Source of the DNA: Haliotis cracherodii
Taxonomy: Eukaryota
Assembly (NCBI RefSeq): GCF_022045235.1
Contig: NW_027266308.1
Coordinates: forward strand, 45,818,001-45,882,000
DNA: 64,000 nt
Direction: 5' to 3'
The position numbers were made by a program, and so were the translations under genes. The notes under the pieces were generated by a model that did not search any database, had not been told where the DNA came from, and saw only the letters and a program-made list of their open reading frames with translations. Of this stretch, positions 1,147 through 41,695 are shown one piece after another. How positions within the stretch are numbered: the stretch's first letter is position 1; each line of letters opens with the position of its first letter.

Positions 1147-1182
1147 GTAGCCTGTAGCCTGTAGCCTGTAGCCTGTAGCCTG
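1147..1182. repeat. (TAGCCTG)5 heptamer run; about 2 units at the paralogous site (~15607)
   Basis: Read directly from both copies. Confidence 0.85.
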
Positions 1183-4100: not shown

Positions 4101-5217
4101 TACCATTTACTATACCATTATACCGAATCTGACCACCCAATTCCGTTAGTTGCATTTTACGCCAAGCATAGCCGCCTTTTACGGCAAGAATGGGTTGCTG
4201 AAGACCTATTCTACCGCGGATCTTCACGGGTGTACTGCAGTAGAAAGGGAAAAGAATTTGTATTGTCTTCCTTTTTGTCTGGCGTTATGTTATTGTTGCA
4301 CTTTCTCATGTTCCTCAGCAGATGTCAAAACCTTTAACTGGCCATATATTTGACAACGCGGTAATTTCAAAGCAATCTTGATGCATGTGGTTGATGCTAT
4401 CAAGCCATTCTTGGGTTAGCCTTGTGATTAAAGCGTTTGTTCGTCACGGGTTCCCTACATTGTTACTATGTATGAAGCCCATTTCTGGTGTTCTCCGCCC
4501 TGATATTGCTGGAATAATACTAAGAGGGGCGTCAAACCATACGTACTCACTCATTCAATCAACAGATACCAGGGTAGCAAGATTCTAGGACTTGCATAAT
4601 TGACATGTTTGCCCGTCAATCGAGTTGTACACATTGTGATAAAGGTGTATTTCGTTCTCTGTGTGGTTTGATAAATAAACAGATATTTGGACATTCCCTC
4701 CATTGCCCTAATAATGTAACAATAATCCCCAAAGGGGCATTAAACATCAAATTCACTTCTCACTCATGAACAAAGCAGTCGGTTTCCAACATCAATCCTG
4801 AATACAGGATTACCTTACGTTAACGTTGCTCTTACTTTCTCCAGTCGATTCGGAAGATTTGGATGCTGGTTCTCAAATAAATCACGTTATCATATCAGAC
4901 AGCCACCACATTGAATGAGAACGAGAGAAACATCAAACATTTTACACCTGACAAACTGTTGGTAGATACATAAAAGGATACTTAAAACAGAACGTGTAGA
5001 ATATTTTCCGGAATGAAAAAGGGAGTGGTTTATGACATCATGCCTTTATTATTTTGCTCAGATGCCAGGATAGCAAGATGCGAAGACCTGCAGAGTTTTC
5101 CTTTTTTTGTCCGCCATCGTGTTATTGCTGCAGTATTTTACACATTGGCAATAACACCTTGCAACAGAGTCTAACAATTATGGACAATACAGAGAATGTT
5201 TAATATTTTTTCAACTT

Positions 5218-8200
5218 TCAATTACCTATATCGTTGTTCTCAGTTTCTTCTGTCGATTCTGATAACTCAGAGGACGATTCTGTAAATATAAGGCACGTCA
5301 TCCTGTCAACTAGCCATCCCATAGCAGTGGGGCCAGTCATTTTAAGTAACTGTTACAGTACATGATTCAGTGACGACTGCGACATTTATAGATATCTAAA
5401 GGGTGAACACATACTAGAATAATCTACATTTCTTGAGATGCATTGGTAACACGGACACTATGACACATTTGTCGTGTTTTTGCAGGCTTTCTCTCATTGT
5501 AATATTTCAACGATCATTTCATTTCGGAAGTTAAACCTCCCACTCAGTCATCACTTACATATTGTCAAAAGTGATTTTCTTTTAACATGTAACCAAGATA
5601 AACGATTACCTTTTTCCTTAATCTCAGTTTCCTCTGTCGATTCTGAAGATTGAGAGGACGATTCTGTAAATATAAGGCACGTCATCCTGTCAACTAGCCA
5701 TCCCATACCAGTTGGGCCAGTCATTTTAAGTAACTGTTACAGTACATGATTCAGTGACGACTGCGACATTTGAGACATCTAAGAGGATGAACACATACTA
5801 GAATAATCTACATTTCTTGAGATGCATTGGTAACACGGACACTATGACACATTTGTCGTGTTTTTTGCAGGCTTTCTTTCATTGTAATATTTCAACGATC
5901 ATTTCATTTCGGAAGTTAAACCTCCCACTCAGCCATCACTTACGTATTGTCAAAAGTGATTTTCTTTTAACATGTAACCTAGATAAACGATTACCTTTTT
6001 CCTTAATCTCAGTTTCCTCTGTCGATTCTGAAGATTCAGAGGACGATTCTGTAAATATAAGGCACGTCATCCTGTCAACTAGCCATCACATAGCAGTTGG
6101 GCCAGTCATTTTAAGTAACTGTTACAGTACATGATTCAGTGACGACAGCGACATTTGAGACATCTAAGTGGATGAACACATACTAGAATAATCTACATTT
6201 CTTGAAATGCATTTGTAACACGGACACTATGACACATTTGTCGTGTTTTTGCAGGCTTTCTCTCATTGTAATATTTCAACGATCATTTCATTTCGGAAGT
6301 TAAACCTCCCACTCAGCCATCACTTACGTATTGTCAAAAGTGATTTTCTTTTAACATGTAACCTAGATAAACGATTACCTTTTTCCTTAATCTCAGTTTC
6401 TTCTGTCGATTCTGAAGATTTAGAGGACGATTCTGTAAATATAAGGCACGTCATCCTGTCAACTAGCCATCACATAGCAGTTGGGCCAGTCATTTTAAGT
6501 AACTGTTACAGTACATGATTCAGTGACGACTGCGACATTTGAGACATCTAAGTGGATGAACACATACAAGAAAAATCTACATTTCTTGAGATGCATTGAT
6601 AACACGGACACGATGACACATTTGTCGTGTTTTTGCAGGCTTTCTTTCATTGTAATATTTCAACGATCATTTCATTTCGGAAGTTAAACCTCCCACTCAG
6701 CCATCACTTACGTATTGTCAAAAGTGATTTTCTTTTAACATGTAACCTAGATAAACGATTACCTTTTTCGTTACTTTCAGTTTCTTCTGTCGATTCTGAT
6801 AACTCAGAGGACGATTCTGTAAATATAAGGCACGTCATCCTGTCAACTAGCTATCGTATAGCAGTTGGTTCAGTCATTTTAAGTAACTGTTACAGTACAT
6901 GATTCAGTGACGACTGCGACATTTGAGACATCTAAGAGGATGAACACATACTATAATAATCTACATTTCTTGAGATGCAATTGTAACACGGACACTATGA
7001 CACATTTGTCGTGTTTTTGCAGGCTTTCTTTCATTGTAATATTTCAACGATCATTTCATTTCGGAAGTTAAACCTCCCACTCAGCCATCACTTACGTATT
7101 GTCAAAAGTGATTTTCTTTTAACATGTAACCTAGATAAACGATTACCTTTTTCCTTAATCTCAGTTTCCTCTGTCGATTCTGAAGATTGAGAGGACGATT
7201 CTGTAAATACAAGGCACGTCATCCTGTCAACTAGCCATCACATAGCAGTTGGTTCAGTCATTTTAAGTAACTGTTACAGTACATGATTCAGTGACGACTG
7301 CGACATTTATAGATATCTAAAGGATGAACACATACTAGAATAATCTACATTTCTTGAGATGCATTGGTAACACGGACACTATGACACATTTGTCGTGTTT
7401 TTGCAGGCTTTCTTTCATTGTAATATTTCAACGATCATTTCATTTCGGAAGTTAAACCTCCCACTCAGCCATCACTTACGCATTGTCAAAAGTGATTTTC
7501 TTTTAACATGTAACCAAGATAAACGATTACCTTTTTCGTTACTTTCAGTTTCTTCTGTCGATTCTGATAACTCAGAGGACGATTCTGTAAATATAAGGTA
7601 CGTCATCCTGTCAACTACCTATCGTATAGCAGTGGGGCCAGTCATTTTAAATAACTGTTACAGTACATGATTCAGTGACGACTGCGACATTTGAGACATC
7701 TAAGTGGATGAACACATACTAGAATAATCTACATTTCTTGAGATGCATTGGTAACACGGACACTATGACACATTTGTCGTGTTTTTGCAGGCTTTCTCTC
7801 ATTGTAATATTTCAACGATAATTTCATTTCGGAAGTTAAACCTCCCACTCAGCCATCTCTTACCTATTGTCAAAAGTGATTTTCTTTTAACATGTAACCT
7901 AGATAAACGATTACCTTTTTTCTTAATCTCAGTTTCTTCTGTCGATTCTGAAGATTGAGAGGACGATTCTGTAAATATAAGGCACGTCATCCTGTCAACT
8001 AGCCATCCTATAGCAGTTGGGCCAGTCATTTTAAGTAACTGTTACAGTACATGATTCAGTGCTGACAGCGACATTTATAGATATCTAAAGGATGAACACA
8101 TACTAGAATAATCTACATTTCTTGAGATGCATTTGTAACACGGACACTATGACACATTTGTCGTGTTTTTGCAGGCTTTCTCTCATTGTAATATTTCAAC

Positions 8201-11200
8201 GATCATTTCATTTCGGAAGTTAAACTTTCCACTCAGCCATCACTTACGTATTGTCAAAAGTGATTTTCTTTTAACATGTAACCTAGATAAACGATTACCT
8301 TTTTCCTTAATCTCAGTTTCTTCTGTCGATTCTGAAGATTCAGAGGACGATTCTGTAAATATAAGGCACGTCATCCTGTCAACTAGCCATCACATAGCAG
8401 TTGGGCCAGTCATTTTAAGTAACTGTTACAGTAGATGATTCAGTGACGATTGCGACATTTGAGACATCTAAGAGGATGAACACATACTAGAATAATCTAC
8501 ATTTCTTGAGATGCATTGGTAACACGGACACGATGACACATTTGTCGTGTTTTTGCAGGCTTTCTCTCATTGTAATATTTCAACGATCATTTCATTTCGG
8601 AAGTTAAACCTCCCACTCAGCCATCACTTACGTATTGTCCAAAGTGATTTTCTTTTAACATGTAACCTAGAAAAACGATTACCTTTTTCCTTAATCTCAG
8701 TTTCCTCTGTCGATTCTGAAGATTCAGAGGACGATTCTGTAAATATAAGGCACGTCATCCTGTCAACTAGCCATCAGATAGCAGTGGGGCCAGTCATTTT
8801 AAGTAACTATGACAGTACATGATTCAGTGACGACTGCGACATTTATAGATTTCTAAGTGGATGAACACATACAAGAATAATCTACATTTCTTGGCCATTC
8901 TTGGGTTAGCCTTGTGATTAAAGCGTTTGTTCGTCACGGGTTCGGTTCCCTATATGGTTACTGTGTATGAAGCCCATTTCTGGTGTTCTCCGCCCTGATA
9001 ATGCTGGAATATTACTAAAAGCGGCGTCAAACCATACGTTCGCACTTACTCAATCAACATATGCCAGGGTAGCATTCCCTCAATCGCCCTAAAAATGTAA
9101 CAATAATCCCTAAACGGGCATTAAACATCACATTCACTTCTCACAGTCGATTTCTAACATCAATCATGAATACAGGATTATCATCGTCGTTGCTCTTACT
9201 TTCTTCAGTCGATTCGGAAGATTCGAATGATGATTCTCAAATATATCACATCATCATGTCAGATAGCCACAACATTGAATGAGAACGAGGGAAACATCAA
9301 ACATTTTACACCTGACAAACTGTTGGTAGATACATAAAAGGTTTCTTAAAACAGAACGTGTAGAATATTTTCCGGAATGAAAAAGGGAGTGGTTTATAAC
9401 ATCATGCCTTTATTATTTTCTTCAGATGCCAGGATAGCAAGATGCGAAGACCTGGGTTCCCTACATTGTTACTATGTATGAAGCCCATTTCTGGTGTTCT
9501 CCGCCCTGATATTACTGGAATAATACTAAGAGGGGTGTCAAACCATACGTACTCACTCATTCAATCAACAGATACCAGGGTAGCAAGATTCTAGGACTTG
9601 CATAGTTGACATGTTTGCCCGTCAATCGAGTTGTACACATTGTGATAAAGATGTATTTCGTTCTCTGTGTGGTTTGATAAATAAACAGATATTTGGACAT
9701 TCCCTCCATTGCCCTAATAATGTAACAATAATCCCAAAAGGGGCATTAAACATCAAATTCACTTCTCACTCATGAACAAAGCAGTCGGTTTCCAACATCA
9801 ATCCTGAATACAGGATTACCTTACGTTAACGTTGCTCTTACTTTCTTCAGTCGATTCGGAAGATTTGGATGATGGTTCTCAAATAAATCACGTTATCATA
9901 TCAGATAGCCACCACACTGAATGAGAACGAGAGAAACATCAAACATTTTACACCTGACAAACTGTTGGTAGATGAAAAAGGGATTGGTTTATGACATCAT
10001 GCCATTATTGTTTTCTTCAGATGCCAGGATAGCAAGATGCGAAGACCTGTAGAGTTTTCCTTTTTTGTCCGTCATCGTGTTATTGCTGCAGTATTTTACA
10101 CATTGGCAATAACACCTTGCAACAAAGTCTAACAATTATGGACAATACAGAGGATGTTTAATATGTTTTCAACTTTCAATTACCTTAATCGTTGCTCCCT
10201 TTTTTTCTTTTGGCGATTCTGTAAATATAAGGCACGGCATCCTGTCAACTAGCCATCCCATAGCAGTGGGGTCAGTCATTCTAAGTAACTGTTACAGTAC
10301 ATGATTCAGTGACGACTGCGACATTTATAGACATTTAAGCGGGTGAACACATACAAACATAATCTACATTTCTTGAGATGCATTGGTAACACGGACGCTA
10401 TGACACATTTGTCGTGTTTTGTGTGGCATAAGAATGCACAGATAAACAAGGAAACATCATTTACAATGACCAGCTGGTGGTAGATAAATAAAAAGATAAC
10501 AAACAAGTTAGAAAGAGAAAATGATCGCAGGCTACCTAATGCCATAAGCTACCTATTTCGAAATAACCTTGCTTGATTGTAAAGAGTTGATGACATCAGT
10601 ATCGCTTGATATTTCAACCGTTCCACGAATGGAAGAAAAACAATGTGTATATAAACCTAATAAGCTTCTATTTGGCTTTCAAGATTGCGGATTAACCAGG
10701 TTGTAAAACACACGGTGTATTGAATAAACATTGCACCGGTACAGATGATTGACATTCATACAAAATTAAGGTGATCTGCCCTTTTTTCAGATAAAAGAGA
10801 TTAAATTGTTTGTATAGTAATAATTTCATGTTCATTCTTATCAGTGTTGATGTCTTTACAAAATTACTGCCCCGTCGTGGTTAGGAACGCCCACACACAC
10901 CATCAAGTGATGGTCCAAAAGATTGTTCCTTCCATGTAAGATTTGGTTCCATTCATGTCATTATAAAACACGATTTGTTTTACATTGGTCCTCATTTCAC
11001 TAAGATAATTAGATAATTCTTTCACAGATGTACAATTTTTTTTAACACCAAGGATGTCTTTCGAAACATATCAGTTTAGATGATTGCGTCTTTCTTATAT
11101 TACCTGTCAAGTAGCACTAGATGAGCTACAGAACACGCCTCTCAACCTGAACATTAACTACATGATTACCTTCAATATCACGCTTCACTTCTTCTGTTGA

Positions 11201-13980
11201 CTCCGAGGATGATGAGGAAGAGGAACCAGAGGTTGATTCAGAGGAAGATTCTAATGGTGACAGATTTAACAAATATTAGTGAAATGTTGGTTGTTTTGTT
11301 CTATCAATCTATATTTCTCCTATCCTCCTACATCTTGAATGGAAAACTGTTTCCATTATGTCGACAGTGACAACTGTCACAGTTCTGGACATCTAAAAAA
11401 GATGAACTCGTGGAAATATAGTCTTCGTGCTGTGGAGCCTCAACATGCAATTACCTTCATCGTTGCTCTTGCTTTCTTCTGTCCATTCTAATGATTCATA
11501 GCAGTGGGGTCAGGCATTCTAAGTAACTGTTACAGTATATGATTCAGTGACGACTACGACATTTATAGATAACTAATTGGGTTAACACATACAAGAATAA
11601 TCTATATTTCTGGAGATGCAGTGGTAATTTGTAGTATATTTGTATATGGAATACTCATGAAATATACCTTCATCATTGCTGTCACCATCTTCTGTCGATT
11701 CTGAGGAGGATTCCGAAGACGATTCTAAATTGAATAATTTAACACATTTGCTTATCAAATGCTCATGTAATAACAAATAAATCTAGACATACTTTGATCA
11801 TGTGTCCCTAAAATTCTAATGGTTGATGCATGAAAGGATAAAACAGAAAAAATAGAGAACGGAGGGAGAACTGTCCAGCATACTGGTAAAACACTAATTC
11901 TCATATAACTATGTTTCACGTATGAAGGGTCTTTTGACTGCAACTGCGTCAGTAGAAACTTACAAGCTTCAATTCGCGGAAGGCTGGGGACTATGGTTTA
12001 TACCGTCATGTTTTTATCTGTTTCACTGTTATGTGGGATGGCTAGACGCCAGAACATAATTATCAGGCTTTCTCTCATTATGATATTGCAACGATACTTT
12101 CACTGCGGACGTCAAACCACCCACTCAGCCATAACTTACTTATTGTAAAAAGTGATGTAACCTAGATAAACGATTACCTTCATCATTGCTCTCATCTTCT
12201 TCTGTCAATTCTGATGATTCAGGGGATGATTCTACAAGTATTAAGTACGTCAACATGTCAACTAGCCATTGTATGACATTGAAATGCACAGACAAGTGAG
12301 GAACATACAATACCCTGACGAGCTGGTGCTAGGTAAATAAAAGGATAAAAAACAAGTTAGAAAGAGAGAATGAGCGCGGGCTTCATTACGCTTTTAGATA
12401 CATATTTCGAAATAACCTTGTTCGATTATAAAGAGTTGATGACATCAGTATGTCTTGATATTTCAACCGTTCCATGAATGGAAGGCAAAATAGTGTGTAT
12501 TAACCTAATAAGCTGCTATATGACTTTCAAGATTGCGGATTAACCAGGTAGAACACACGATGTCTTGAATAAACATTGCACAGGTATATATCAGTGACAT
12601 TCATACAAAATTAAGGTGTTCTGTGCCCCGTTGTTACTTTTTTCATATAAAATTGATGAAATTGTTTGTATAGTAATAATTTCTTTTTCATTCTTAGCAG
12701 TGTTGATACCTCAACTCAATTAGTGTCCCTTTGTGGTTAGGGACGCCCACACACTCAAATCATCAAGTGATGGTCCAAAAGGTTGGCACCGTTCACGTCA
12801 TTAAAAAGCATGTGTTTTGCGATTGGTCCTGAATTTATTCAGATGATTAGATAATACTTTCACAGATGTAAATTCTTTTTAACACCAAGGATATGTCTTT
12901 CCTAACATTTCAGTTTAGATGATTGCGTCTTTCTTATATAACCTGTCAAATAGCACGAGATGAGCAACAGAACACGCCTCTCAACCTGAACATTAACTAC
13001 ATGATTACCTTCAGTATCACGCTTCACTTCTTCTGTGGACTCCGAGGATGATGAGGAAGAGGAACCAGAGGATGATTCAGAGGCAGACTCTAATTGTAAC
13101 AGATTTAACAACTATTAGTAAAATATCGGTTGTTTTGATCTATGAATCTATATTTCTCCTATCCTCCTATATGGTCTGTGGAAAACTAAGTGTGATCAGG
13201 AAGCAATTCTAAAATAGCTGTTTCCTGTAGATGGATTGTGACAACTGTAAGAATTCTAGATATCTAGAAAAGATTAATTGGAAGAATGGTCTTTATTTCT
13301 TGAGATTCATTGGTAGCTGAATGCTATTACATGCTTGTTTTGTTTTTAAAGGGCACATTAAAGGGCAGATTTTCATACTAAAGGGCAGATTTTCATACTT
13401 TAAGACATACCTAATCACAAATGTTTGACCAAAATTAATTTGAAAAACGGAGGGAACATTAAAAATACGATAAAAACTGACAGGCGAAATAGTGCCCCGA
13501 AGGCATAAATTCGCCTCTGGTGATAAAACAGGTTCCTAATGTTTGACGTGCTGCGCAATTTGAACGATGAGCTGGGGCCAGTTTGTCTGCTTCCGCCTCG
13601 GATTTTTTAATCGAATTAAAGGGCAGGTGGTTATGTTGCCCAAACAGTATGTAAGTCATAAAAATCTAGTTTCAGACATTAGTTGTTATGGTAATTATTC
13701 ACAATGTCAAGTTCAAAGGTCATTTCACACACTCGCCCCTTCTATTATCAGTCCATCAGGAAACAGTTGTATGTTTGTGGATTTGGCCTAATTTTGTTCG
13801 GTTTATGGTAACATAAATGCAAAAGTGCTTTGTTAGTCATTTAAATGCCACTCAATCACTTGCAACGTAATCATTTTCATTACCTTCAAAAGCTTCCCTA
13901 ATGTTTCCTCCTCGAATGCGACTACCTTCAGTCAGAGTGATTGACACCAGGAGAACGGAGAGCAACACCTGTACGATCAT
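5218..13980 (-). CDS. Gene A: predicted secreted Ser/Glu-rich acidic phosphoprotein built from phase-1 micro-exons (~305 aa)
   Basis: ATG at 13980. Signal-peptide exon CDS 13980-13884 (MIVQVLLSVLLVSITLTEG-SRIRGGNIREAFE, donor GTAATG). GT-AG micro-exons: 13089-13009 (ESASESSSGSSSSSSSESTEEVKRDTE), 12231-12178 (ESSPESSELTEEDESNDE), 11724-11668 (ESSSESSSESTEDGDSNDE), 11250-11170 (ESSSESTSGSSSSSSSESTEEVKRDIE). Then ten 54-nt exons: 8736-8683, 8352-8299, 7968-7915, 7584-7531, 7200-7147, 6816-6763, 6432-6379, 6048-5995, 5663-5610, 5279-5226 (ESSSESSESTEETEIKEK-type). All are multiples of 3, phase 1-1 and stop-free. The 3' end is uncertain; read-through of the last donor gives TGA at 5220-5218. Confidence 0.75.
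5221..8892. repeat. 384-bp tandem array (~9.5 units), each unit carrying one 54-nt coding micro-exon of gene A
   Basis: Exon ends fall at 5226, 5610, 5995, 6379, 6763, 7147, 7531, 7915, 8299 and 8683 (spacing 384-385). The acceptor (cctt[a/g]tatttacag) and donor (gtaat) are retained in every unit. Confidence 0.97.
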
Positions 13981-14193
13981 TTTGCACTGAAACATATTGA
14001 CATTTTGTAATAAGCATGCGTTTTTCTTCTTTTGGCGGTGTTAGAAATTCATTTGTTTCATGCAGTGAAACGAGACCAACTACATAGTTGTTTGTTAACA
14101 CAAGCATACCAACACTTTAGTATTCCAGTATGGACGATGATGTTAAAAAATCGTAAGCTACTGTGAAAAAAACCCACAATGGTTCGTACTTAC

Positions 14194-14340
14194 CTGCGAA
14201 AGTGAACTGGTGAATTCTTAGAATCTTTCTGATCAACAGGGCATTTATATAGTACTTTAGATAACGTCATTATTATCAAATATTCTTAAAATGCGACATC
14301 TGGAGGATAATTATTCATGTCATCTGAATAAAGTAACCAT
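14194..14340 (-). promoter_or_regulatory. Gene A core promoter and non-coding exon 1
   Basis: TATATAAA on the minus strand at ~14251-14244. TGACGTTA (CRE-like) at ~14269-14262. Exon 1 ends at 14194 with a strong CAG|GTAAGT donor. The exon 2 acceptor (tgtttcag) lies 6 nt before the ATG. Confidence 0.7.
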
Positions 14341-16899
14341 CTTCTTACCTAAAACACTATGCACACGGTAAGTCAACTTGCAACAAAGTACCAAATGAAA
14401 TAAGCTCAAAGATCACGTATCGTATCTAAAACATGCTGGTCAGCACACTTCACTTTTGAATGTGTATGTCGATATCAAATGATCAGGAAACTCGTGTCAG
14501 ATTTATGTTATTTATATCTATATATGAATAAAATGATCAAAATCTCCTTTACATTCAGAAGCCAGATGTTCTGGCCTGTTACAGCACATTTCCTTTAAAT
14601 GTGCATATTGATATACATCAATTTATTTTAACTGTGGTACATTATGCTTATCGTCAGTTATATATTAATATCGATAGATAGATTTTCAAATTACATCGGA
14701 ATGAAACATCGGGGGGATATATATTCATTACATTTGGATAAAGTTATCAGCTTCTGTAAGAGTACCAGATGGTATTTATTCATTGAAAGCATCTTTCCTT
14801 TCACTGTAATATAAAAGGAAGATATTTACCGACATCCATATATACTACATGATCAATTCTTCATGAACATTTATTATAGTCACATTGAGCCATCGAGTAA
14901 ATGAAGCCCTGGTCTTCTATTTCATCCTTTTTACCAAATGGTGTTATCGCACAGATTTGTTATAGTGTGGTGTATGTGGCGTTTCCTGTGGAGTTTGGAC
15001 TTTAGCATAAACATGTGGGTACAGGATGATTTTGTAGTTCAGTTTTTCCGAGGTGTTTTCATTCCGTAAGTTACCTTCTCTCTTAAGTCTTGCGTAAATA
15101 AGTGCTGACTTCATAGAAAGATTGAGTTACGTCCTTGTCCAATGGCTGGATAGGCGACTCTCACAATTTGTTAGGTACAGTAAAGCATACTCTTTTTTTT
15201 CTACGAAAGATTCAAAGAGCAGCATACGACTTTTGCTCCAACGCTGTTTGATCAGCGTTACAACATTCATGGCCTCAGTAAACCTTTCAAAAAGTATGTG
15301 TTTGTTGCCTGCACATAGCGTTTCTCCTCCCAATATTTGTCTGAAAGAAAAACCGAATTACGTCTGATGTGTACAAGTGCAGAGATTCTGCTAGTTATCA
15401 GTGATAGAAAAACGTTCGTTTTTCAACACAATGGGAACGGTTTTAATGTATCGGTCCAAACATATCTTTTGTCGCTGACGCAGCATAATTGATAAATGCT
15501 ACTGAGCTTATGATGACACTCGGAGACCTCAATCCACCAGCAGAAACATCGACCAAGTGATGACACCAAGTGTTCGCGAAAAGGGGAAGCATTCCCTACT
15601 CTATCAGTAGCCTGTAGCCTGTACCGGTGGCCAATTTGTCTGTAAACAATCGAGTCTTGACCAGATAATCTAGTGATATTATTTTGTAAATCAGTGATGA
15701 CACAATCGACACAGCAGAGTCTCTTCACTTGCAAGCAGCAGACGTAATTCAAAATAACAATATCGTTGAAAGTTGAAACGAGATATCGTTTCACTGGATT
15801 GTCTGGTTAAGAGTCGATAGTGTCACCACTGTATACTTTTTCATCACTATTTTGTCTTTCTTCGCCCAATGTTTTGGCAAATAATCGAGATTGGTTATTC
15901 TCCTGCGTTGACTGAATATTACTTGAACTGGGACGATGTTATCTTGATGGACTGAAGATTCCGAGTTTCACCATCAGCTCAATAGCTCTTATCAATTATG
16001 CTGAAATGTTTTTGTGCTGATACATTGAAACTGCTCAAGACTTTCTCTTTATTTGGAAGCACCAGAGAATCTTTCACTTATACTACCCTGGGTGAAGTCA
16101 ATTGCTGGTGTCCCCCGTGGTATTTCTGGAATATTGCTAAAAGCGGCGTAAAAGAATACTTACTCACGCACATGGTCATGTTAGATGACCATCTGTTTTG
16201 GAGTAACAGTTATTACTTTCAGGATTAGCTTTTGAATCCACGACTGGGATCGTTATCATCCTCAGTGCCTATTCTCTATATTTCTTCCGTCGGGATACAA
16301 TGACACACGAAGTCGCCTGACTACCCGATCCATTAAGTTGCCTCTAACGACCAGCATTGGTGAGCAATTCTCACCAGGAATACCCAAGAATCCCTACATG
16401 GTACAGGTTGTTTGATAGTGGCCCCACGTTGCATTATCTAAATGTTGTCATGATCCAATAGTCAGTTGTTTCAGAATTACTTCACTTAATGCACTGCCTT
16501 CTACGTTTAGCCGATTGGAGAGTATCCATTCATTACTGAATTGATATCCGAGATTTCGATAAGTAAAACTACACACATGTCTTTTTGGTTGTTGGAAGTT
16601 ATTATGAATGATATTGTATTTTATAAACACCGATAGTTATTGTTGTTCAGTTCTTTATAATCTCAGTCAACTACAAAATAAAAGCTATAAAACCATTTCC
16701 ATATTCATCTGAAAATTCTGCCGAAAGCAAGCCGATTGTACGATTCCGACTATATCATGAGCATGTGTTTATAAATCACATTCAAATAGAGGTGATACCA
16801 GGTGTTCGCGAAAAGGTGAACGTATCCTAACCCCACCAGTGGCACCCGTCACAAACACATGCAAAGGCAAGGGAGATGAATTGTTCACTTGAAAACATG

Positions 16900-17050
16900 G
16901 GAACATATGTTGATTAAACAACTTCTGAGCAAGAGTCGTACGAGGCTCTTTGAAATCTTGGAAGAAAGAAAATGTTCGATTGTATCTCAAAAGTTGTGAA
17001 ATGTAGGCATTAAGGGATTGAGCTGCAGGAATATTGCTCGACAAATAGGA
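16900..17050 (-). mobile_element. Penelope-like RT C-terminal fragment; related remnants at ~640-830 (+), ~15120-15300 (+) and ~2640-2735 (-)
   Basis: SSNIPAAQSLNAYISQLLRYNRTFSFFQDF resembles the SSNIP...Y.SQLIRY.R region that follows the RT in these elements. Confidence 0.65.
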
Positions 17051-18979
17051 AAAGTTGACTGTTGGAAAGTTGAAGTCTTCTCGTTGTCTTGTCTTGTGGA
17101 GAGTGTTTTGTCATTCAGAATCTTTATGCATAGATCTAAATATGAAAAAGACGAGACGTTCTCATTTATCTCCTTTATTTCAGTGGAAGGAATATGCTTA
17201 TTGATGATTATTGAACGATTTCAGATCATTGATGTAGATGACATTAAATCATAAAGACATTAAAACTGCACTCATGTGACCTGCATGATTGTGTGACGTG
17301 TCGATTGTGTGTATCGTTGCCAATACGACCAACCATCAGTTGTCTGGTTCAGTTTCGATTGCCAATTGGCATTCTTTGTTACATTGTTTTTGTGCAAAAG
17401 CATTCACCCACCCACCCCTGAAACATTGTCACTTCTCACATTAACTTCTCTCTAAACCATCTCGCAGAGAATAGGACTCCTTTACTCCTTATTCTAATTT
17501 TTGTGTGAATCATCATTTCTGATGGTTTATCTTTTTCCATGAATGAGATTCGAGACACGCATACGCCCGCGCACGCACGTACTCACGCACGCAATCACGC
17601 ACGCACGCACGCACGCACCCACACGGGTAGGGAAGGTGGGTGACTTGACTAATGAAGTGTCACTGTACCCATACGGAATGGAATGTTGCTCACAACATCA
17701 GGGCGGTTTCAAAGTAAAAGTAATGAAACACGGTTGCCGAAGCACTCGATTTTAAAGGTTTACGGCTGCCATAGGGCTAGCGATTTATGTCGTTGTCACA
17801 ATTACATCCGGTCAATGATCCACTTTTCCTTGATCACTGTATATGGAGGACACCGTCTGCATGTTTTCAGAGAAGATTCCCTTTATTCTCTTGGAACTGA
17901 TAAAGATGTTTTTGCCTATTCGAAGGTTTGGGAACCTTGACTGAAACGCCATAGATTGTCACATAATGTTACACAAAGACACATTCTGTCACGAACTTTT
18001 TATTCTATAAAACATACAATTGAAATGCTATCGGTCGATATTTCTGCACAGTTGATAAAGGCAGGTTTCCAAGCAGTGTTCCATCCTCTATGCAAATTTC
18101 GCTGAAAAAGAGAATTGATTTTGAGACCAGAAACTCCATCTTGGACATACATTGATGATTCATATTTGTTTGTAAATCTGTAAATAATCAAGTGTGGACC
18201 AGTCAATCCAGTGATCGACATCATGAGCATCGATAAACGCATTTGGGACAAGATGACATGCATCAACCAAGTCAGTGAGCTCAACCACCCGATCTCGTCA
18301 GTCGCCTCTTAGTACAAACATGGGTTGCTGAAGACTAATTTTAACCCGGATCTTCACGGGTATTGTTGACTCGTACATATACAGGGGTACATATGTTATA
18401 TCTATCACGAGCATACTACACCATTTACTATGCCCACTATACCATATTCCTACAGTATTTTTATATTTCATCATAGTTCTTGTTTCTAAACACAGTTTAA
18501 AAATGTGACTACATCGTCTACATATCATCTGATAATATCAAGATTACTTTGTTTTTCTAGATGCTGCAGTAGATTGTTTGGTTGGTTTCTTGTTTTACGC
18601 CGCACTCGGAAATATTCCAGCTATATGACGGCGGTCTGTAAATAATCGAGTCTGGAATAGACAATCCAGCGAGCCTGACCACCCCATCCCGTTAGTTGCA
18701 TTTTACGACCAGCATAGTCGCCTTTTACGGCAAGACTGGGTTGCTGAAGACCTATTCTACCGCGGATCTTCACGGGTGTGCTGCAGTAGAAAGGGAGAAG
18801 AATTTGTATTGTCTTCCTTTTTGTCTGGCGTTATGTTATTGTTGCACTTTCTCATGTTCCTCAGCAGATGTCAAAACCTTTAACTGGCCATATATTTGAC
18901 AACGCGGTAATTTCAAAGCAATCTTGATGCGTATATGAAGAATTGAGGATTTAATAGACTTAATGAATATTGTGTATTA

Positions 18980-21900
18980 TCAATTGATTTTATAGATGAA
19001 TATATCGTTACCTAAAAGTAACCTAGTAAAAGCTATCATAGTCGGTAACTGCAACATGCGTTTCCTTGTTTGTTGTTTAATGGCGGTTTGTAAATTATCA
19101 AGTCTTGACCAGAAAATCGAGTGATTGACACCATGTGCATAAATCTACGCTATTGGGATACGATGACATGTATCAACAAAGTAAGCAAGCCTGAACAGTG
19201 AACACCCGACCTCATTAGTCGCTCTTACGACAAACATAGTCGCCTCCTATGGGTTGCTGAAGACCAAGACTGGTCTTCACAGGTAGCAACATCACATGAC
19301 AAGATACGTTCAAACAAGTAGAGTCGTCCTTTCACAAAAGGCAGATGTAGCACAAGGCTATGACATTCTCGTCGTGTTTTTTCTACTGCACCCATAAACG
19401 TAAGATTACCTTCTTCGTTCTCATTTTCTTCTGAGGATTCTGAGGAGGATGACGAAGATGAAGATGACCCAGAGGATGATTCAGAAGATGATTCTAAAAT
19501 CAGTAAGAAACCTTCACAAATCAAATGATTATATTATATAATGGGAATATAACAAAGAGCTAACAAACTGAGTGCGGACAAAGTATGCAAGAAAATAGGG
19601 ATAACAACCTGGTTAAGTGGATCGAAAATATTTCAAATAACCATTATCCAAATATGAACGGTTGATGCTTGCAATAGGACTATTTCAAAATAGCGAAACA
19701 TAGTTGTATGCTTTATCCTGATATAAGAATGCCGTAGTTGGTTCTCTGCTTGGTGTGAGTTGAATAAAGTATTGGGCGTTTGCCTGACAGGAGCATTAAA
19801 CATCTCACTCATTTCTCCTTAATGGCTAAATCATAGGATTTTAACACAGGATTACCTTCCTCGCTGTTCTCACTTTCTTCTGTCGACTCGGATGATTCCG
19901 ATGATGATTCTTAAAAATAAACATGATATTTTCACGTTGAAAGGCCACACAGCGTCCAGGAACGAGAGGAGAAACGTAGAGCATATGGCATCCTGACAAA
20001 CTTACAGAAAGGATGTTTAGATGAAAGTGAAAATGAGAGTCAAAAGCATGTGGTTGATGCTATCAAGCCATTCTTGGGTAAGCCTTGTGATTAAAGCGTT
20101 TGTTCGTCACGGGTTCGATTCCCTAAACGGTTACTATGTATGAAGCCCATTTCTGGTGTTCTCCGCCCTGATATTGCTGGAATATTACTAAAAGCGGCGT
20201 CAAACCATACGTACTCACTCACTCACTCACTGAACAGATGCCAAGGTAGCAAGATGCTAGGACTTGCATAGTTGACCTGTTTGCCCGTCAATCAAGTTGT
20301 ACTCATTGTGATAAAGCTGTATTTCGTTCTCTGTGTAGTGTGATAATGAACAGAGATTTGGACATTCTTTCCATCGCCCTAATAATGTAACAATAATCCC
20401 AAAAGGGGCATTAAACATCACATTCACTTCTCACTCTTGAACAAAGCAGTCGATTTCTAACATCAATCCTGAATACAGGATTACCTTTCGTCATTGCTCT
20501 TACTTTCTTCAGTCGATTCGGAAGATTCGGATGATGATTCTCAAATAAATCACATTATCATGTCAGATAGCCTCCACATTGAATGAGATCGAGAGAAACA
20601 TCAAACATTTTACACCTGACAAACTGTAGATCCAAAAAAGGATACTTAATACATAACGTGTAGACTATTTTCCTGAATTAAAAAGGGAGTGATTTATGTC
20701 ATCATGCCATTATGGACAATACCGAGGATTTTAAATAATCTTTCAGTTACCCTCATCGTTGCTCTCGCTTTCTTCTGTCGATTCTGATGATTCAGAGGAT
20801 GATTCTGTAAATATAAGGCACGTCATCCTGTCAACTAGCCATCACATAGCAGTGGGGTAAGTCATTCAAAGTAACTGTTACAGTACATCATTCAGTGACG
20901 ACTGCGACATTTGTAGATATCTGAGAGGGTGAACACATAAAAGAATAATTTTGAAAGAGAAAATGATCGTGGGCTTCATAACGCTTTTAGATACCAATTT
21001 CGAAACAACCTTGCTTGATTATAAAGAGTTGACATCAGGATCTCTTGATATTTCAACCGTTGCACGAATGGAAGACAAAATAGTGTGTATTAATCTAATA
21101 AGCTGTTATTTGACTTTCACGATTGCGGATTACCCAGGTTAACACACGATGTCTTGAATTAACATTCGCACAGGTATAGATCAGTGACATCCATACAAAG
21201 TTAAGGTGTTCTGTCCCCTGTTGTTGCTTTTGTCAGATAAAAGAGATGAAAGAGTACGTCTGATAATATGTTCTTTTTTCATTCTCATCAGTTTTGATAT
21301 CTTTACTTAGTCAATTCACCTTTATGGTTAGGATCGGCGCCACACTCAAATAAAATGGTGATTGAAAATATTTTGACATTGCAACGATAATTTCATAGTA
21401 GACGTTAAACCACCCACTCAGGCTTTAAAATATTATTAAGTGATGTAACATGTAACCTAGATAAATGATTGCCTTCATCATTGCTGTCATCTTCTTCTGA
21501 CGATACTGATGATTCAGAGGATGATTCCATAAGTATTAAGTACGTCAACATGTCAACTAGCCATTGTATGACATTGGAATGCACAGACAAACGAGGAACA
21601 TATGTTACCCTGACGAGCTGGTGCTAGGTAAATAAAAGGATAACAAACCAGTTAGAAAGAGAAAATGATCGTGTGCTTTTAGATACATATTTCGAAATAA
21701 CCTTGTTCGATCATAAAGTGTTGATGACATCAGTATGTCTTGATATTTCAACCGTTCCATGAATGGAAAGCAAAATAGTGTGTATTAACCTAATTAGATG
21801 CTACATGGCTTTCAAGATTGCGGATTAACCAGGTTGTAGAACACACGATGTCTTGAATATACATTGCACAGGTATAGATCAGCGACAATCATACAATATT

Positions 21901-24900
21901 AAGGTGTTCTGTGCCCCGTTGTTACTTTTTTTCATATAAAATTGATGAAATTGTTTGTTTAGTAATAATTTGCTTTTCATTCTTAGCAGTGTTGATATCT
22001 TAACTAAATTACTGCTCCTTTGTGGTTAGGAACGCCCTAACACTCTAATCATCACGCGATGGTCCAAAAGATTGTTCCTTCCATGTAAGATTTGACACCG
22101 TTCACGTCATTAAAAAGCATGTTTTTGCGATTGGTCCTCAATTTATTCAGATAATTAGATACTATTTTCACAGATGTACAATACTTTTGAACACCAAAGA
22201 CATGTCTATCCAAACATTTCAGTTTAGATGATTGTATTTTTCTTATATAACCTGTCAAGTAGCACTAGATGAGCAACAGAACACGCCTCTCAACCTGAAC
22301 ATTAACTACATGATTACCTTCAGTATCACGCTTCACTTCTTCTGTGGACTCCGAGGATGATGAGGAAGAGGAACCAGAGGATGATTCAGAGGCAGACTCT
22401 AATTGTAACAGATTTAACAACTATTAGTAAAATATCGGTTGTTTTGATCTATGAATCTATATTTCTCCTATCCTCCTACATCTTCTATGGAAAACTGTTT
22501 CTATTATGTGGATAGTGACAACTGTCACAGTTCAAGACATCTGAAAAGGATAAACTCGTGGAAGAATAGTCTTCGTGCTGTTGAGCCTCAACTGGAGGCA
22601 ATTACCTTCATCGTTGCTCTCGCTTTCTTCTGTCGATTCTGATTATTCATAGCAGTAGGGTCAGGCATTCTAAGTAACTGTTACAGTATATGATTCAGTG
22701 ACGACTGCGACATTTATAGATATCTAATAGGCTGAACACATACAAGAATAATCTACATTTCATGAGATGCAGTGGTAACACGGACGCTATTACACATTTG
22801 TCGTGTTGTTGCTTATGGAACACTCATCAGACATTACCTTCATCATTGCTCTCACCTTCTTCTGTCGATTCTGAGGAGGATGACGAAGATGACCCAGGGG
22901 AGGATTCCGAAGGCGAGTCTAAATTCAATAATGTATCCCATTTACTTATCAAATGCTCAGGAAATAACAAATAAATCTAGACATACTTTGATCATGTTTC
23001 CCTAAAATTCTAATGGTTGATGCATGAAAGGATAAAACAGAAAAAATAGAGAAAGGAGGAAGAACTGTCCAGCATACTGGTAAAACACTAATCCTCAAAT
23101 AACTATGTTTCACGTATGAAGGGTTTCCTGACTGCAATTGCGTCAGTAGAAATTTCCAAGCTTCAATTCGCGGAAGGCTGAGGACTATGGTTTATACCGT
23201 CATGTTTTTATCTGTTTCACTGTAATGTGGGATGGCTAGACGCCAGAACATAATTATCAGACTTTCTCTCATTGTGACATTGCAACGATACTTTCACTGC
23301 GGACGTTAAACCACCCACTCAGCCATCACTTCATTTTTGTCAAAAGTGATTTTCTTTTAACATGTAACCTAGATAAACGATTGCCTTCATCATTGACCTT
23401 ACCTTCTTCTGTCGATTCTGAGGAGGATGACGAAGATGACCCAGGGGAGGATTCCAAAGACGATTCTAAATTCAATAATTTATCCCATTTACTTATCAAA
23501 TGCTCAGGTAATAACAAATACATCTAGACATACTTTGATCATGGTTCCCTAAAAGGATAACAAACCAGTTAGATAGAGAAAATGATAGTGGGCTTGATAT
23601 CGCTTTTAGATACATATTTCGAAATAACCTTGTTCGATTATAAAGTGTTGATGACATCAGTATGTCTTGATATTTCCAACGTTCCATGAATGGAAGGCAC
23701 AATAGTGTGTATTAATCTAATAAGCTGCTATATGGCTTTCAAGATTGCGGATAAACCAGCTTGTAGAACACATGATGTCTTGAATAAACATTGCACAGGT
23801 ATAAATCAGTGACATTCATACAATATTAAGGTGTTCTGTGCCCCGTTGCTATTTTTTTCATATAAAATTGATGACATTGTTTGTTTAGTAATAATTTGCT
23901 TTTCATTCTTAGCAGTGTTGATATCTTAACTAGAGTACTGCTTCTTTGTGGTTAGGAACTCCCTCACACTCTAATCATCAAGCGATGGTCCAAAAGATTG
24001 TTCCTTCCATGTAAGATTTGACACCGTTCACGTCATTAAAAAGCATGTTTTTGCGATTGGTCCTCAATTTATTCAGATAATTAGATACTATTTTCACAGA
24101 TGTACAATACTTTTGAACACCAAAGACATGTCTATCCAAACATTTCAGTTTAGATGATTGTATTTTTCTTATATAACCTGTCAAGTAGCACTAGATGAGC
24201 AACAGAACACGCCTCTCAACCTGAACATTAACTACATGATTACCTTCAGTATCACGCTTCACTTCTTCTGTGGACTCCGAGGATGATGAGGAAGAGGAAC
24301 CAGAGGATGATTCAGAGGCAGACTCTAATTGTAACAGATTTAACAACTATTAGTAAAATATCGGTTGTTTTGATCTATGAATCTATATTTCTCCTATCCT
24401 CCTACATCTTCTATGGAAAACTGTTTCTATTATGTGGATAGTGACAACTGTCACAGTTCAAGACATCTGAAAAGGATAAACTCGTGGAAGAATAGTCTTC
24501 GTGCTGTTGAGCCTCAACTGGAGGCAATTACCTTCATCGTTGCTCTCGCTTTCTTCTGTCGATTCTGATTATTCATAGCAGTAGGGTCAGGCATTCTAAG
24601 TAACTGTTACAGTATATGATTCAGTGACGACTGCGACATTTATAGATATCTAATAGGCTGAACACATACAAGAATAATCTACATTTCATGAGATGCAGTG
24701 GTAACACGGACGCTATTACACATTTGTCGTGTTGTTGCTTATGGAACACTCATCAGACATTACCTTCATCATTGCTCTCACCTTCTTCTGTCGATTCTGA
24801 GGAGGATGACGAAGATGACCCAGGGGAGGATTCCGAAGACGAGTCTAAATTCAATAATTTATCCCATTTACTTATCAAATGCTCAGGAAATAACAAATAA

Positions 24901-27153
24901 ATCTAGACATACTTTGATCATGTTTCCCTAAAATTCTAATGGTTGATGCATGAAAGGATAAAACAGAAAAAATAGAGAACGGAGGGAGAACTGTCCAGCA
25001 TACTGGTAAAACACTAATCCTCAAATAACTATGTTTCACGTATGAAGGGTTTTTTGACTGCAATTGCGTCAGTAGAAATTTCCAAGCTTCAATTCGCGGA
25101 AGGCTGAGGACTATGGTTTATACCGTCATGTTTTTATCTGTTTCACTGTAATGTGGGATGGCTAGACGCCAGAACATAATTATCAGACTTTCTCTCATTG
25201 TGACATTGCAACGATACTTTCACTGCGGACGTTAAACCACCCACTCAGCCATCACTTCATTTTTGTCAAAAGTGATTTTCTTTTAACATGTAACCTAGAT
25301 AAACGATTGCCTTCATCATTGACCTTACCTTCTTCTGTCGATTCTGAGGAGGATGACGAAGATGACCCAGGGGAGGATTCCAAAGACGATTCTAAATTCA
25401 ATAATTTATCCCATTTACTTATCAAATGCTCAGGTAATAACAAATACATCTAGACATACTTTGATCATGGTTCCCTAAAAGGATAACAAACCAGTTAGAT
25501 AGAGAAAATGATAGTGGGCTTGATATCGCTTTTAGATACATATTTCGAAATAACCTTGTTCGATTATAAAGTGTTGATGACATCAGTATGTCTTGATATT
25601 TCCAACGTTCCATGAATGGAAGGCACAATAGTGTGTATTAATCTAATAAGCTGCTATATGGCTTTCAAGATTGCGGATAAACCAGCTTGTAGAACACATG
25701 ATGTCTTGAATAAACATTGCACAGGTATAAATCAGTGACATTCATACAATATTAAGGTGTTCTGTGCCCCGTTGCTATTTTTTTCATATAAAATTGATGA
25801 CATTGTTTGTTTAGTAATAACTTGCTTTTCATTCTTAGCAGTGTTGATATCTTAACTAGAGTACTGCTCCTTTGTGGTTAGGAACGCCCTCACACTCTAA
25901 TCATCACGCGATGGTCCAAAAGATTGTTCCTTCCATGTAAGATTTGACACCGTTCACGTCATTAAAAAGCATGTTTTTGCGATTGGTCCTCAATTTATTC
26001 AGATAATTAGATACTATTTTCACAGATGTACAATACTTTTGAACACCAAAGACATGTCTATCCAAACATTTCAGTTTAGATGATTGTATTTTTCTTATAT
26101 AACCTGTCAAGTAGCACTAGATGAGCAACAGAACACGCCTCTCAACCTGAACATTAACTACATGATTACCTTCAGTATCACGCTTCACTTCTTCTGTGGA
26201 CTCCGAGGATGATGAGGAAGAGGAACCAGAGGATGATTCAGAGGCAGACTCTAATTGTAACAGATTTAACAACTATTAGTAAAATATCGGTTGTTTTGAT
26301 CTATGAATCTATATTTCTCCTATCCTCCTATATCGTCTATGGAAAACTAAGTGTGATTAGGAAAACATTCTAAAATAGCTGTTTCCTGTAGATGGATTGT
26401 GACAACCGTCACCATTCTAGATATCTAGAAAAGATAAATTGGAAGAATGGTCTTCATTTCTTGAGATGCATTGGTAGCTGATTTCTGTGACATGCTTGTT
26501 TTGGTTTTTTTAAAGGGCACATTAAAGGGCACGTAAACTCAACATACTCACTTTGCAGATTTTCATACTTTAAGACATACCTAATCACAAATGTTTGACC
26601 AAAAATAAATTTGAAAAACGGAAGGAACATTGAAAATACGATAAAAACTGACAGGCGAAATAGTGCCCCAAAGGCATAAATTCGCCTCTGGTGATAAAAC
26701 AGGTTCCTAATGTTTGACGTGCTGCGCAATTTGAACGATGAGCTGGGGCCAGTTTGTCTGCTTCCGCCTCGGATTTTTTAATCGAATTAAAGGGCAGGTG
26801 GTTATGTTGCCCAAACAGTATGTAAGTCATAAAAATCTAGTTGCAGACATTAGTTGTTATGGTAATTATTCACAATGTCAAGTTCAAAGGTCATTTCACA
26901 CACTCGCCCCTTCTAGTATCAGTCCATCAGGAAACAGTTGTATGTTTGTGGATTTGGCCTACTTTGTCCCGCATATGTTAACATAAACGCGAATGTGCTT
27001 TGTTAGCCATTTAAATGTCACTAAATCACTTGCAACTAAATCATTCTCATTGAGCCCAAACGTAGGAATACCTTCAAAAGCACCCCGAATGCCTATGCCT
27101 TCAGTCAGAGTGACTGACACCAGGAGAACGGAGAGCAACACCTGTACGATCAT
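18980..27153 (-). CDS. Gene B: paralogous predicted secreted Ser/Glu-rich acidic phosphoprotein (~280-290 aa)
   Basis: ATG at 27153. Signal exon CDS 27153-27072 (MIVQVLLSVLLVSVTLTEG-IGIRGAFE, donor GTATTC). Micro-exons: 26250-26170, 25391-25329 (or to 25311 with a GC donor), 24844-24764, 24324-24244, 23465-23403 (or 23385), 22918-22838, 22398-22318, 20804-20751, 19909-19856, 19493-19410 (ESSSESSSGSSSSSSSSESSEENENEE). Candidate terminal exon starts at 19011 after ttacttttag and encodes GNDIFIYKIN*, TGA at 18982-18980, with ATTAAA at 18955-18950. Confidence 0.8.
21990..26340. repeat. 1926-bp near-identical tandem duplication (~2.3 units), each with three 81-nt exon modules plus one truncated exon
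   Basis: Homologous exons at 22318/24244/26170, 22838/24764 and 23385/25311. Identical ORFs recur at 1926-bp spacing in the ORF track. Confidence 0.95.
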
Positions 27154-27306
27154 TTTGCACTGAAACATATTAACAATCACATTTTAGGCATACAGATGAA
27201 TACATTGTGTCATATATCTTGCTTGTCATACAGTTGAAACAAAATATAATCTCTGCAAGAGTAACGTCTAAAGCTCAGCTAAGATACGTACGTGGAGCCT
27301 AGTCAC

Positions 27307-27450
27307 CTGTGAGTATGAACGGTTGGGTTCTTTGTAGATAAATTGCTGCACAACAGAGCGTTTATATAGCGTTGCAGATATAACGTCACTGACAGATATA
27401 TCATCAGAATGAAATATCTGGGGGATATTTATTCATTGCATTTCATGGTG
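27307..27450 (-). promoter_or_regulatory. Gene B core promoter and non-coding exon 1
   Basis: TATATAAA on the minus strand at 27368-27361. TGACGTTA at ~27388-27381. Exon 1 ends at 27307 with CAG|GTGACT. Same layout as gene A. Confidence 0.7.
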
Positions 27451-31824: not shown

Positions 31825-32237
31825 TACGGCAGCGTAGTGGGGTCACAGTGAATGTTTTGGGGGTCTAAGTATCTCCTACGTAGGACTTAGTACCTTCTAC
31901 GTAGGACTTAGTATCGCCTACGTAGGATTTATTATCTCCTACGTAGGACTTAGTATCGCCTACGTAGGATTTATTATCTCCTACGTAGGACTTAGTATGG
32001 CCTAGAATTACTATCTCCTACGTAGGACTTAGTATCATCTGCGTAGGACTTACTATATCCTACGTAGGGCTTACTATCTCTTACGTAGGACTTAGTATGG
32101 CCTAGAATCACTATCTCCTACTTAGGACTTACTATCTCCTACGTAGAAGATACTAAGTCCTACGTAGGAGATAATAAGTCCTACGTAGGAGATACATAGA
32201 CAAACAAAATTCACCGTGGCCCTACTACGCTTCCGTA
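31825..32237. mobile_element. TA-flanked MITE filled with ~21-bp tandem repeats that have a palindromic CCTACGTAGG core
   Basis: ~35-bp inverted termini (tacggcagcgtagtggggtcacagtgaat / attcaccgtggccctactacgcttccgta). The internal repeats switch orientation near 32145. Confidence 0.8.

Positions 32238-36186: not shown

Positions 36187-41695
<5,509 letters not shown>

Follow-up and report, generated by a model that had tools for sequence, protein, structure and literature searches.

What does a gene make when nearly all of its coding sequence lies in very short exons, each encoding a run of serine and glutamate? The question is raised by a window of 64,000 nucleotides from the abalone Haliotis cracherodii (NCBI RefSeq assembly GCF_022045235.1, contig NW_027266308.1, forward-strand positions 45,818,001 to 45,882,000; positions below count from its first letter unless a contig is named), in which a preliminary description had proposed two hidden minus-strand genes for secreted phosphoproteins of casein-like design. 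Here we report that the proposed genes, A and B, are real: RNA depth and joints with GT..AG ends identify gene B as spliced and expressed. They belong to a cluster of four tandem paralogs (A–D), two of which lie inside the window, both on the minus strand. We consider it reasonably likely that the cluster is a lineage-specific tandem family of secreted disordered polyanions that would be phosphorylated and act by multivalent charge.

Gene B is assembled from symmetric micro-exons

A TATA box, CTATATAAA, precedes all four paralogs. In genes A and B a short untranslated exon lies about 30 nt past this box and is closed by a GT donor, and exon 2 stands directly after tttcag, with a 6-nt leader, an ATG, a signal-like peptide and a short tail that ends in phase 1. 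The micro-exons that follow measure 33, 36, 54, 57, 63, 81 or 84 nt, each a multiple of three, with phase 1-1 and AG/GT flanks; almost all start with (G)AATC or (G)AGTC and encode the module E-S-S-S-E-S-S-E-S-T-E-E (ESSSESSESTEE-type) with an acidic or lysine-containing tail. We located them by reading the minus strand of 1-28000 for AG..GT segments of a length divisible by three that are open in phase 1. This reading bears out the plan claimed for both genes (TATA box, untranslated exon, signal exon, symmetric phase-1 cassettes) and revises its numbers: exon sizes are 33-84 nt where 54-84 nt had been given, and usable cassettes number 13 in gene B and 17-18 in gene A where 10 and 14 had been counted. 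The parts of gene B, all on the minus strand, are listed below.

27369 to about 17980, minus: gene B, TATA box to poly(A) region
27361..27369, minus: TATA box (CTATATAAA)
27292..27339, minus: exon 1, untranslated; start approximate; donor CCAC/GTACGT between 27292 and 27291
27072..27159, minus: exon 2; 6 nt untranslated, ATG at 27153, predicted signal peptide, tail IGIRGAFE, phase-1 end
26170..26250, minus: 81-nt micro-exon (ESASESSSG..STEEVKRDTE); depth up to 61,000; both edges in RNA joints
25329..25391, minus: 63-nt micro-exon; GT donor after 25329; joints 25391>26170 and 26250>25329
24764..24844, minus: 81-nt micro-exon; joints 24844>26170 (GT..AG) and 26250>24764
24532..24564, minus: 33-nt micro-exon (ESTEESESNDE); bin depth 137-4061; joints end at 24532; skipped in some contigs
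22318..24324, minus: second copy of a 1,926-bp block plus a third 81-nt exon (24324-24244, 23465-23403, 22918-22838, 22638-22606, 22398-22318)
21473..21526, minus: dead exon copy; acceptor AG changed to GG, donor GT to GC
20751..20804, minus: 54-nt micro-exon (ESSSESSESTEESESNDE); acceptor fits loose RNA ends at 24575 in runs X1, X2 and X5
20504..20539, minus: micro-exon of 36 nt with GTAAGA donor; longer form 55 nt, to 20485
19856..19909, minus: 54-nt micro-exon, from the scan
19410..19493, minus: 84-nt micro-exon, last cassette (..SSESSEENENEE), from the scan
17980..18101, minus: terminal exon; acceptor ctctttttcag, ends AKFA, stop 18090-18088, AATAAA at 18004; poly(A) site approximate

RNA joins the predicted exons

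A word search of public runs with gene B as query picked out five in which 6-8% of its words occur. By our estimate, roughly this fraction of the 31-letter words of gene B falls entirely within its exons, and contigs of four of these runs were compared with the window over 24400-27600. Depth along this segment was 137-61,000 in exon bins versus 0-15 in intron bins, and the joints 25391>26170 and 24844>26170 coincide exactly with the predicted edges; their ends are CT..AC as read on the plus strand and so GT..AG in the direction of the gene. The precise removal of the introns indicates that the runs are RNA. Two joints that go back, 26250->25329 and 26250->24764, record these exons spliced to the next 81-nt exon, and joints that go back by 1926 reveal the period of the gene B exon block. 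A GC donor 18 nt further on had been proposed for the exon at 25391; the RNA joint leaves it unused and takes the GT donor after 25329.

The preliminary description had named spliced RNA joining the signal exon to the micro-exons as a check, and such RNA is present, in frame, in one contig of run X3 (record 19; 185 nt, depth 905), which joins exon 1 letters, the signal exon and the first cassette. In order it carries 15 letters (27309-27295), the signal exon (27162-27086), 27 letters resembling the tail of gene A, and the cassette from 26252, with a frame that reads open by hand (..IGIRERSLREAFE-ESASE..). Since its 15 loose letters match 27309-27295 with one mismatch, the exon 1 donor previously placed between 27307 and 27306 is not used, and we assign the donor to 27292/27291.

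Splicing varies among contigs: 26170 joins to 25391 or to 24844, and between 24764 and the following 81-nt exon the 33-nt exon is present in some joints and absent from others. Because the contigs span several organism labels and paralogs, alternative splicing and differences between genes are inseparable here. Loose ends extend the comparison to exon types further along the gene. The ends GATACTGAAG/AATCATCCTC, at the type of the dead exon (21473..21526), run on into the 20804-type exon; in X3, a loose end at 24574 joins a 54-nt form of the 20539-type exon to the 19909-type exon, and the long 55-nt form in the window holds one A more than this 54-nt RNA form. Exon ends of the gene D type are also visible among the loose ends. 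Separately, low-depth contigs of X2 and X5 skip 446 intron bases (24737-25184) between ends that read CT..AT, which are not splice sites; this is probably a DNA-level insertion or deletion between species or alleles, carried in unspliced RNA or contaminating DNA.

RNA also settles the end of the gene. Contigs ending in ..GAAGAAG (loose ends at 24776) run on with CGAAATTTGCATAGAGGATGG in all four runs, and CGAAATTTGCATAGAGGATGG is window 18101-18081, which after ctctttttcag reads Ala-Lys-Phe-Ala-stop in phase 1. An exon encoding GNDIFIYKIN (18980..19011, minus strand) had been put forward as the last exon; genes B and C alone have it, flanked by interspersed-repeat copies, and in the RNA comparison, which covered 24400-27600, the claim is unsupported, loose ends of all four runs leading into the 18101 exon. 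Copies of that exon stand at 3765 in gene A, -15602 in gene C and -26244 in gene D.

Four paralogs in tandem

The signal exon has four copies genome-wide, all inside 47 kb of the window's contig (C45). Genes A and B had been described as a pair; the pair itself stands, but its true extent is a four-gene cluster reaching past the window. In 40 kb fetched past window base 1, genes C and D are both complete (C45:45,791,600-45,817,800). We joined every usable cassette of each gene into an all-inclusive model, and all four models close on the stop of the terminal exon.

Gene A model: 19 coding exons, 349 amino acids (aa), closing on the terminal-exon stop
Gene B model: 15 coding exons, 306 aa, closing on the terminal-exon stop
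Gene C, TATA box at -238 and terminal exon at -15602 in window coordinates, beyond window base 1; model of 29 coding exons, 527 aa, closing on the terminal-exon stop
Gene D, TATA box at -19663 and terminal exon at -26244 in window coordinates, beyond window base 1; model of 11 coding exons, 254 aa, closing on the terminal-exon stop

Gene A was considered as a truncated pseudogene, and this was ruled out: it is complete because a terminal exon of the 18101 type stands at 3765. Its exon 2 has an identical copy in gene C, and its copy at 10218-10184 is degenerate because it is 35 nt long. The parts of gene A are as follows.

14252 to about 3645, minus: gene A, TATA box to poly(A) region
14244..14252, minus: TATA box (CTATATAAA)
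14194..14222, minus: exon 1, untranslated; start approximate; donor CGCAG/GTAAGT
13884..13986, minus: exon 2; ATG at 13980, predicted signal peptide, tail SRIRGGNIREAFE, phase-1 end
9200..13089, minus: non-array micro-exons 13089-13009 (81 nt), 12231-12178 (54), 11724-11668 (57), candidate 11487-11455 (33), 11250-11170 (81), 9877-9842 (36) and 9235-9200 (36)
5226..8736, minus: exon-plus-intron tandem array; ten 54-nt exons, each followed by an intron of about 330 nt; exon starts 8736, 8352, 7968, 7584, 7200, 6816, 6432, 6048, 5663 and 5279
4836..4871, minus: candidate 36-nt micro-exon, from the scan
3645..3765, minus: terminal exon, copy of the gene B 18101 exon; ends AKCAYRMEHC, stop 3736-3734, AATAAA at 3669

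Outside their arrays genes A and C are 97-99% identical, gene B matches gene A at 84-90%, and genes B and D match at 73-91% in exons and introns alike; gene D, at about 80% identity, is older. The DNA 3′ of gene A (window 1-4400) is an 88-97% copy of the DNA 3′ of gene B (14440-18950), and a (CGCA)n microsatellite lies in both downstream regions (3244-3296 and 17570-17622), the unit of gene plus spacer having been duplicated whole. A lone cassette of the 81-nt type (ESSSESSSGSSFSSASESTEDMKRDSE) lies at -28962 to -29042 in window coordinates, with no signal exon detected nearby, and may be the relic of a fifth gene copy.

Exon-plus-intron units differ in number among the genes

The gene A array is a tandem repeat of whole splicing units. 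Tandem Repeats Finder (TRF) reports a period of 384 over 5238-8893, with 9.5 copies and 94% matches, corresponding to ten units of a 54-nt exon and a 330-nt intron; all ten exons are open in phase 1 with AG/GT intact. Gene C holds 21 copies of the array unit to gene A's 10, its copies lying in a 3,759-bp higher-order repeat, and gene B carries its 1,926-bp block about 2.5 times. We infer that array exons are included in mRNA because splice sites are intact in all 31 units of genes A and C, their frames are open and their variation is weighted to third positions. The 384-bp unit has 54 matches in the genome, all within the cluster, which rules it out as a genome-wide satellite. The spider Flag silk gene is reportedly built of iterated exon-intron modules whose introns are as similar as the exons or more so; there as in the abalone array the repeat unit is exon plus intron, homogenized together, and Flag silk differs in its exons, which are neither micro-exons nor acidic but large, with Gly/Pro-rich structural motifs as their product.

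Nucleotide diversity (pi) within the array is 0.069 in exons versus 0.0375 in introns, and by codon position the diversity of array units is highest, at 0.13, for third positions, with 0.05 for second and 0.025 for first. The higher exon diversity agrees with whole units evolving in concert, two exon types alternating among them, and does not demonstrate constraint. Comparing exon with intron conservation, across array units and between genes B and D, gave no clear contrast, and we make no strong claim of purifying selection. Several cassettes are decaying: 21526 has lost both splice sites, 10218 has shrunk to 35 nt, 9235 has lost its distal GT donor, and 20539 carries an extra A in its long form. 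Such decay, together with array exons that are less conserved than the introns, is what would be expected if the locus were a transcribed repeat without protein function, its reading frames a by-product of a GAA/TCN-rich satellite. We regard that explanation as extremely improbable, since paralogs up to about 20% apart keep the signal exon, splice sites, phase and closing stop over 11-29 exons, splicing is precise, RNA depth is very high and variation is concentrated at third codon positions.

Under our favored explanation, in which the locus encodes secreted polyanions, cassette number would set protein length and module content; unequal crossing-over of exon-plus-intron units would have led to 10 units in gene A against 21 in gene C and to the 1.9-kb block present 2.5 times in gene B, and cassette skipping during splicing would probably add further variation.

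The products are predicted to be secreted polyanions

The predicted mature proteins consist of 34-49% Ser and 24-35% Glu, together 58-74%; left unmodified, they would have net charges of -56 to -141. Each holds 26-75 S-x-E and 56-82 S-x-S sites, in agreement with the S-x-E-rich acidic product that had been claimed. The signal exon peptide, MIVQVLLSVLLVS(V/I)TLTEG, has an uncharged hydrophobic core of 15 residues and small residues at -3 and -1; the core makes the N-terminus signal-like, as also claimed, and cleavage is predicted after TEG, before Ser20 or Ile20.

S-x-E/pS is the consensus of the secretory kinase Fam20C, as cited in PMC4094399. The Fam20C domain (PF06702) scores above the Pfam cut-off at at least three loci of this genome:

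C12:20,750,000-20,755,000: Fam20C-domain locus
C12:20,866,000-20,871,000: Fam20C-domain locus
C5:29,318,000-29,323,000: Fam20C-domain locus

On C12 the two loci are separated by 115 kb and occupy opposite strands; their matches to profile positions 129-214 score identically, and the pair looks like a recent inverted duplication.

Together these features suggest a route from gene to product, of which transcription, exact splicing, an open frame behind a signal-like peptide and abundant RNA are observed. A transcript started at the TATA box would be spliced from the untranslated exon, the signal exon, 9 to 27 cassettes and a tiny terminal exon. Its translation product would then enter the secretory pathway and shed a 19-residue signal peptide. 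What is left would be a polyanion of about 235-510 residues, intrinsically disordered, whose S-x-E and S-x-S motifs the Fam20C-type kinases of this genome would phosphorylate in the Golgi. The likeliest action of the resulting poly-phosphoserine/glutamate chain would be to sequester Ca2+ or to bind mineral or other cationic partners in the secretion. A phosphoprotein function is plausible, and among possible actions we would rank calcium or mineral binding first, with packaging of cationic cargo and a glycosylated role next.

The same composition could instead serve a glycosylated polyanion, a mucin-like protein or proteoglycan core in which serines, including those of acidic-flanked Ser-Gly pairs, would carry O-glycans or glycosaminoglycans for hydration, lubrication or mucus structure. 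The proteins are Ser/Thr-rich and repetitive and are predicted to be secreted and disordered, and ESSSG recurs in the 81-84 nt modules; yet they have almost no Pro and low Thr, unlike typical mucin domains, Ser-Gly sites are few per protein, and the Glu placed two residues after Ser throughout is a kinase motif and not a known glycosylation context. We consider this role unlikely. Far less probable still is a precursor cleaved at dibasic KR (EEVKRDTE modules) into smaller active acidic peptides. All 81-nt modules of the 26250 type do contain a KR pair, and FITZAP, an abalone sperm protein, is likewise trimmed by proteolysis (PMC6952181); however, there are 2-3 such sites per protein, array modules have single or acid-flanked Lys, and the proposed KR cleavage is read from sequence.

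Anionic disordered proteins can also act as packaging partners, as serglycin does in mast cells. On this alternative the abalone proteins would neutralize a highly cationic cargo, condense it in a gland or gamete vesicle and let it go in seawater, without any action on calcium or mineral. Extreme expression and a predicted disordered polyanion behind a signal peptide suit such a role, the family evolves fast through duplication, and the expressing runs carry several organism labels within shared studies, which would fit comparative work on reproductive tissue. Abalone sperm moreover use an anionic disordered partner, FITZAP (sp6), for lysin and sp18; FITZAP is secreted, very abundant, disordered, anionic and fast-evolving, with a mature size of 3-4 kDa (PMC6952181). 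FITZAP itself is a different gene, with two exons and poly-Asp, and this structure rules it out as the identity of the present locus (PMC6952181). We rate packaging as improbable.

A known kind of gene design in a new setting

SCPP genes have phase-0 introns and descend in vertebrates from SPARCL1. They include the caseins, osteopontin, DMP1, DSPP and statherin, and they share with the abalone genes an untranslated exon 1, a signal exon 2 and small S-x-E exons, as well as tandem clusters of paralogs and secreted, disordered, acidic products (predicted for the abalone proteins). The SCPP allocation of exon roles, with exon 1 untranslated and exon 2 holding the signal and first mature residues, recurs here and is spanned by the X3 contig. 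SCPP introns are in phase 0, whereas every coding intron of genes A–D is in phase 1, and because the phase-0 rule fails the likeness is at most one of convergent design; the abalone exons, low in complexity, have no detectable similarity to SCPP genes or to anything else. The SCPP-like design that had been claimed thus holds for exon roles, motifs and clustering, and lacks the phase-0 feature, as the claim itself stated. It is a tentative possibility that abalone arrived on their own at a convergent casein/SCPP-like system, a fast-evolving cluster of massively expressed proteins tuned in length by amplification of exon-plus-intron cassettes. These would stabilize or transport calcium, in the form of amorphous CaCO3 or Ca-phosphate, in the service of the shell, the larval shell or the provisioning of eggs.

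A second likeness is to the micro-exon genes (MEGs) of schistosomes, which form trematode families, often hydrophobic, with many exons under 36 nt (PMC10526429, PMC4350168). In both, a signal exon and a terminal exon enclose symmetric micro-exons of up to 81-84 nt, which carry the bulk of the coding sequence, and nothing points to homology between the two; MEG products are secreted and vary by cassette skipping. The architecture of symmetric exons of about 81 nt or smaller, in multiples of three, is found here in exons of 33-84 nt, but the abalone cassettes, unlike those of MEGs, are of one Ser/Glu type and have been amplified with their introns as tandem arrays. At the protein level a functional analogue is sea urchin phosphodontin, a disordered protein whose phosphorylation has been demonstrated by experiment; it carries a secretion signal, and its short acidic Ser/Glu repeats (EISSGEGEQPK) number about 35 (PMC2830187). 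Phosphodontin differs in its unrelated repeat, its Asp-rich C-terminus and its site in the tooth matrix, and phosphorylation of the abalone proteins is a prediction from their motifs.

Database searches returned no relative. phmmer with the 32-aa gene A signal-exon peptide against 1.84 billion cluster representatives gave nothing at E <= 0.001, a weak negative because a query of 32 aa is too short for diverged orthologs. A word-index search with a 43-aa stop-free stretch through the signal exon gave no candidate among eligible proteins of 24-75 aa, and seven exon peptides matched no Pfam family. In the literature, three 9-letter motifs matched no paper in full-text search, and a search on serine-rich acidic phosphoproteins of abalone and other molluscs found nothing fitting. 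An automatically named RefSeq or UniProt entry may well exist, as the search queries were single exon peptides and not the spliced protein, and given the very high RNA depth it is unlikely that an RNA-guided annotation pipeline missed these genes. The cluster is real and expressed, and as a gene family of a known general kind it is apparently uncharacterized.

Evidence that tempers the reading

Several observations weigh against reading the cluster as a family of secreted phosphorylated polyanions. Only one contig, from one run, carries the joint from signal exon to cassette, and the 27 letters in its middle depart from the gene B sequence. Most run contigs match the window at 90-99% identity and the runs carry four organism labels, so that part of the RNA comes from orthologs or paralogs. 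In three runs that share the species label, next to no sampled gene B words occur, which is no proof of absence and hints at tissue-specific expression. The RNA comparison is confined to the gene B segment, so that gene A and its 384-bp array are known from sequence, and in gene B the 1-nt insertion in the 20539 exon would shift the frame if the distal donor were used. None of the motifs SESTEE, ESSSES and MIVQVLL turned up in 28 supplementary files of a Haliotis laevigata shell proteome paper. This is a weak point against a major function in the shell matrix, since proteins of this kind are missed by tryptic mass spectrometry and the runs carry no tissue label. Secretion, phosphorylation and calcium binding, finally, are deduced from the letters of the predicted proteins, and a shell, mucus or adhesive role, as put forward earlier, is a conjecture.

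Other features of the window

Three repeats lie elsewhere in the window.

52635-53711: minisatellite, period 36/54 bp, 20-30 copies, 86-89% matches; very strong GC skew of -0.40 over 52001-54000
37110-37919: tandem duplication of 345 bp, 2.3 copies, 95% matches, holding a tRNA-like piece (GGTTCGAATCCCGG)
31868-32190: tandem repeat, 21-bp/100-bp, about 16 copies, 76-81% matches, with a palindromic core CCTACGTAGG

Implications

Whatever its function, the locus displays the growth and shrinkage of a disordered secreted protein by unequal crossing-over. The cluster's transcript is among the most abundant in some abalone tissue, in a critically endangered species, and merits a name and an assay. 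If its products prove to be phosphorylated calcium binders, the gene design behind the phosphoproteins of vertebrate milk, bone and tooth would have a second case of independent origin, and a mollusc whose shell is well studied would allow the evolution of such proteins to be tested.

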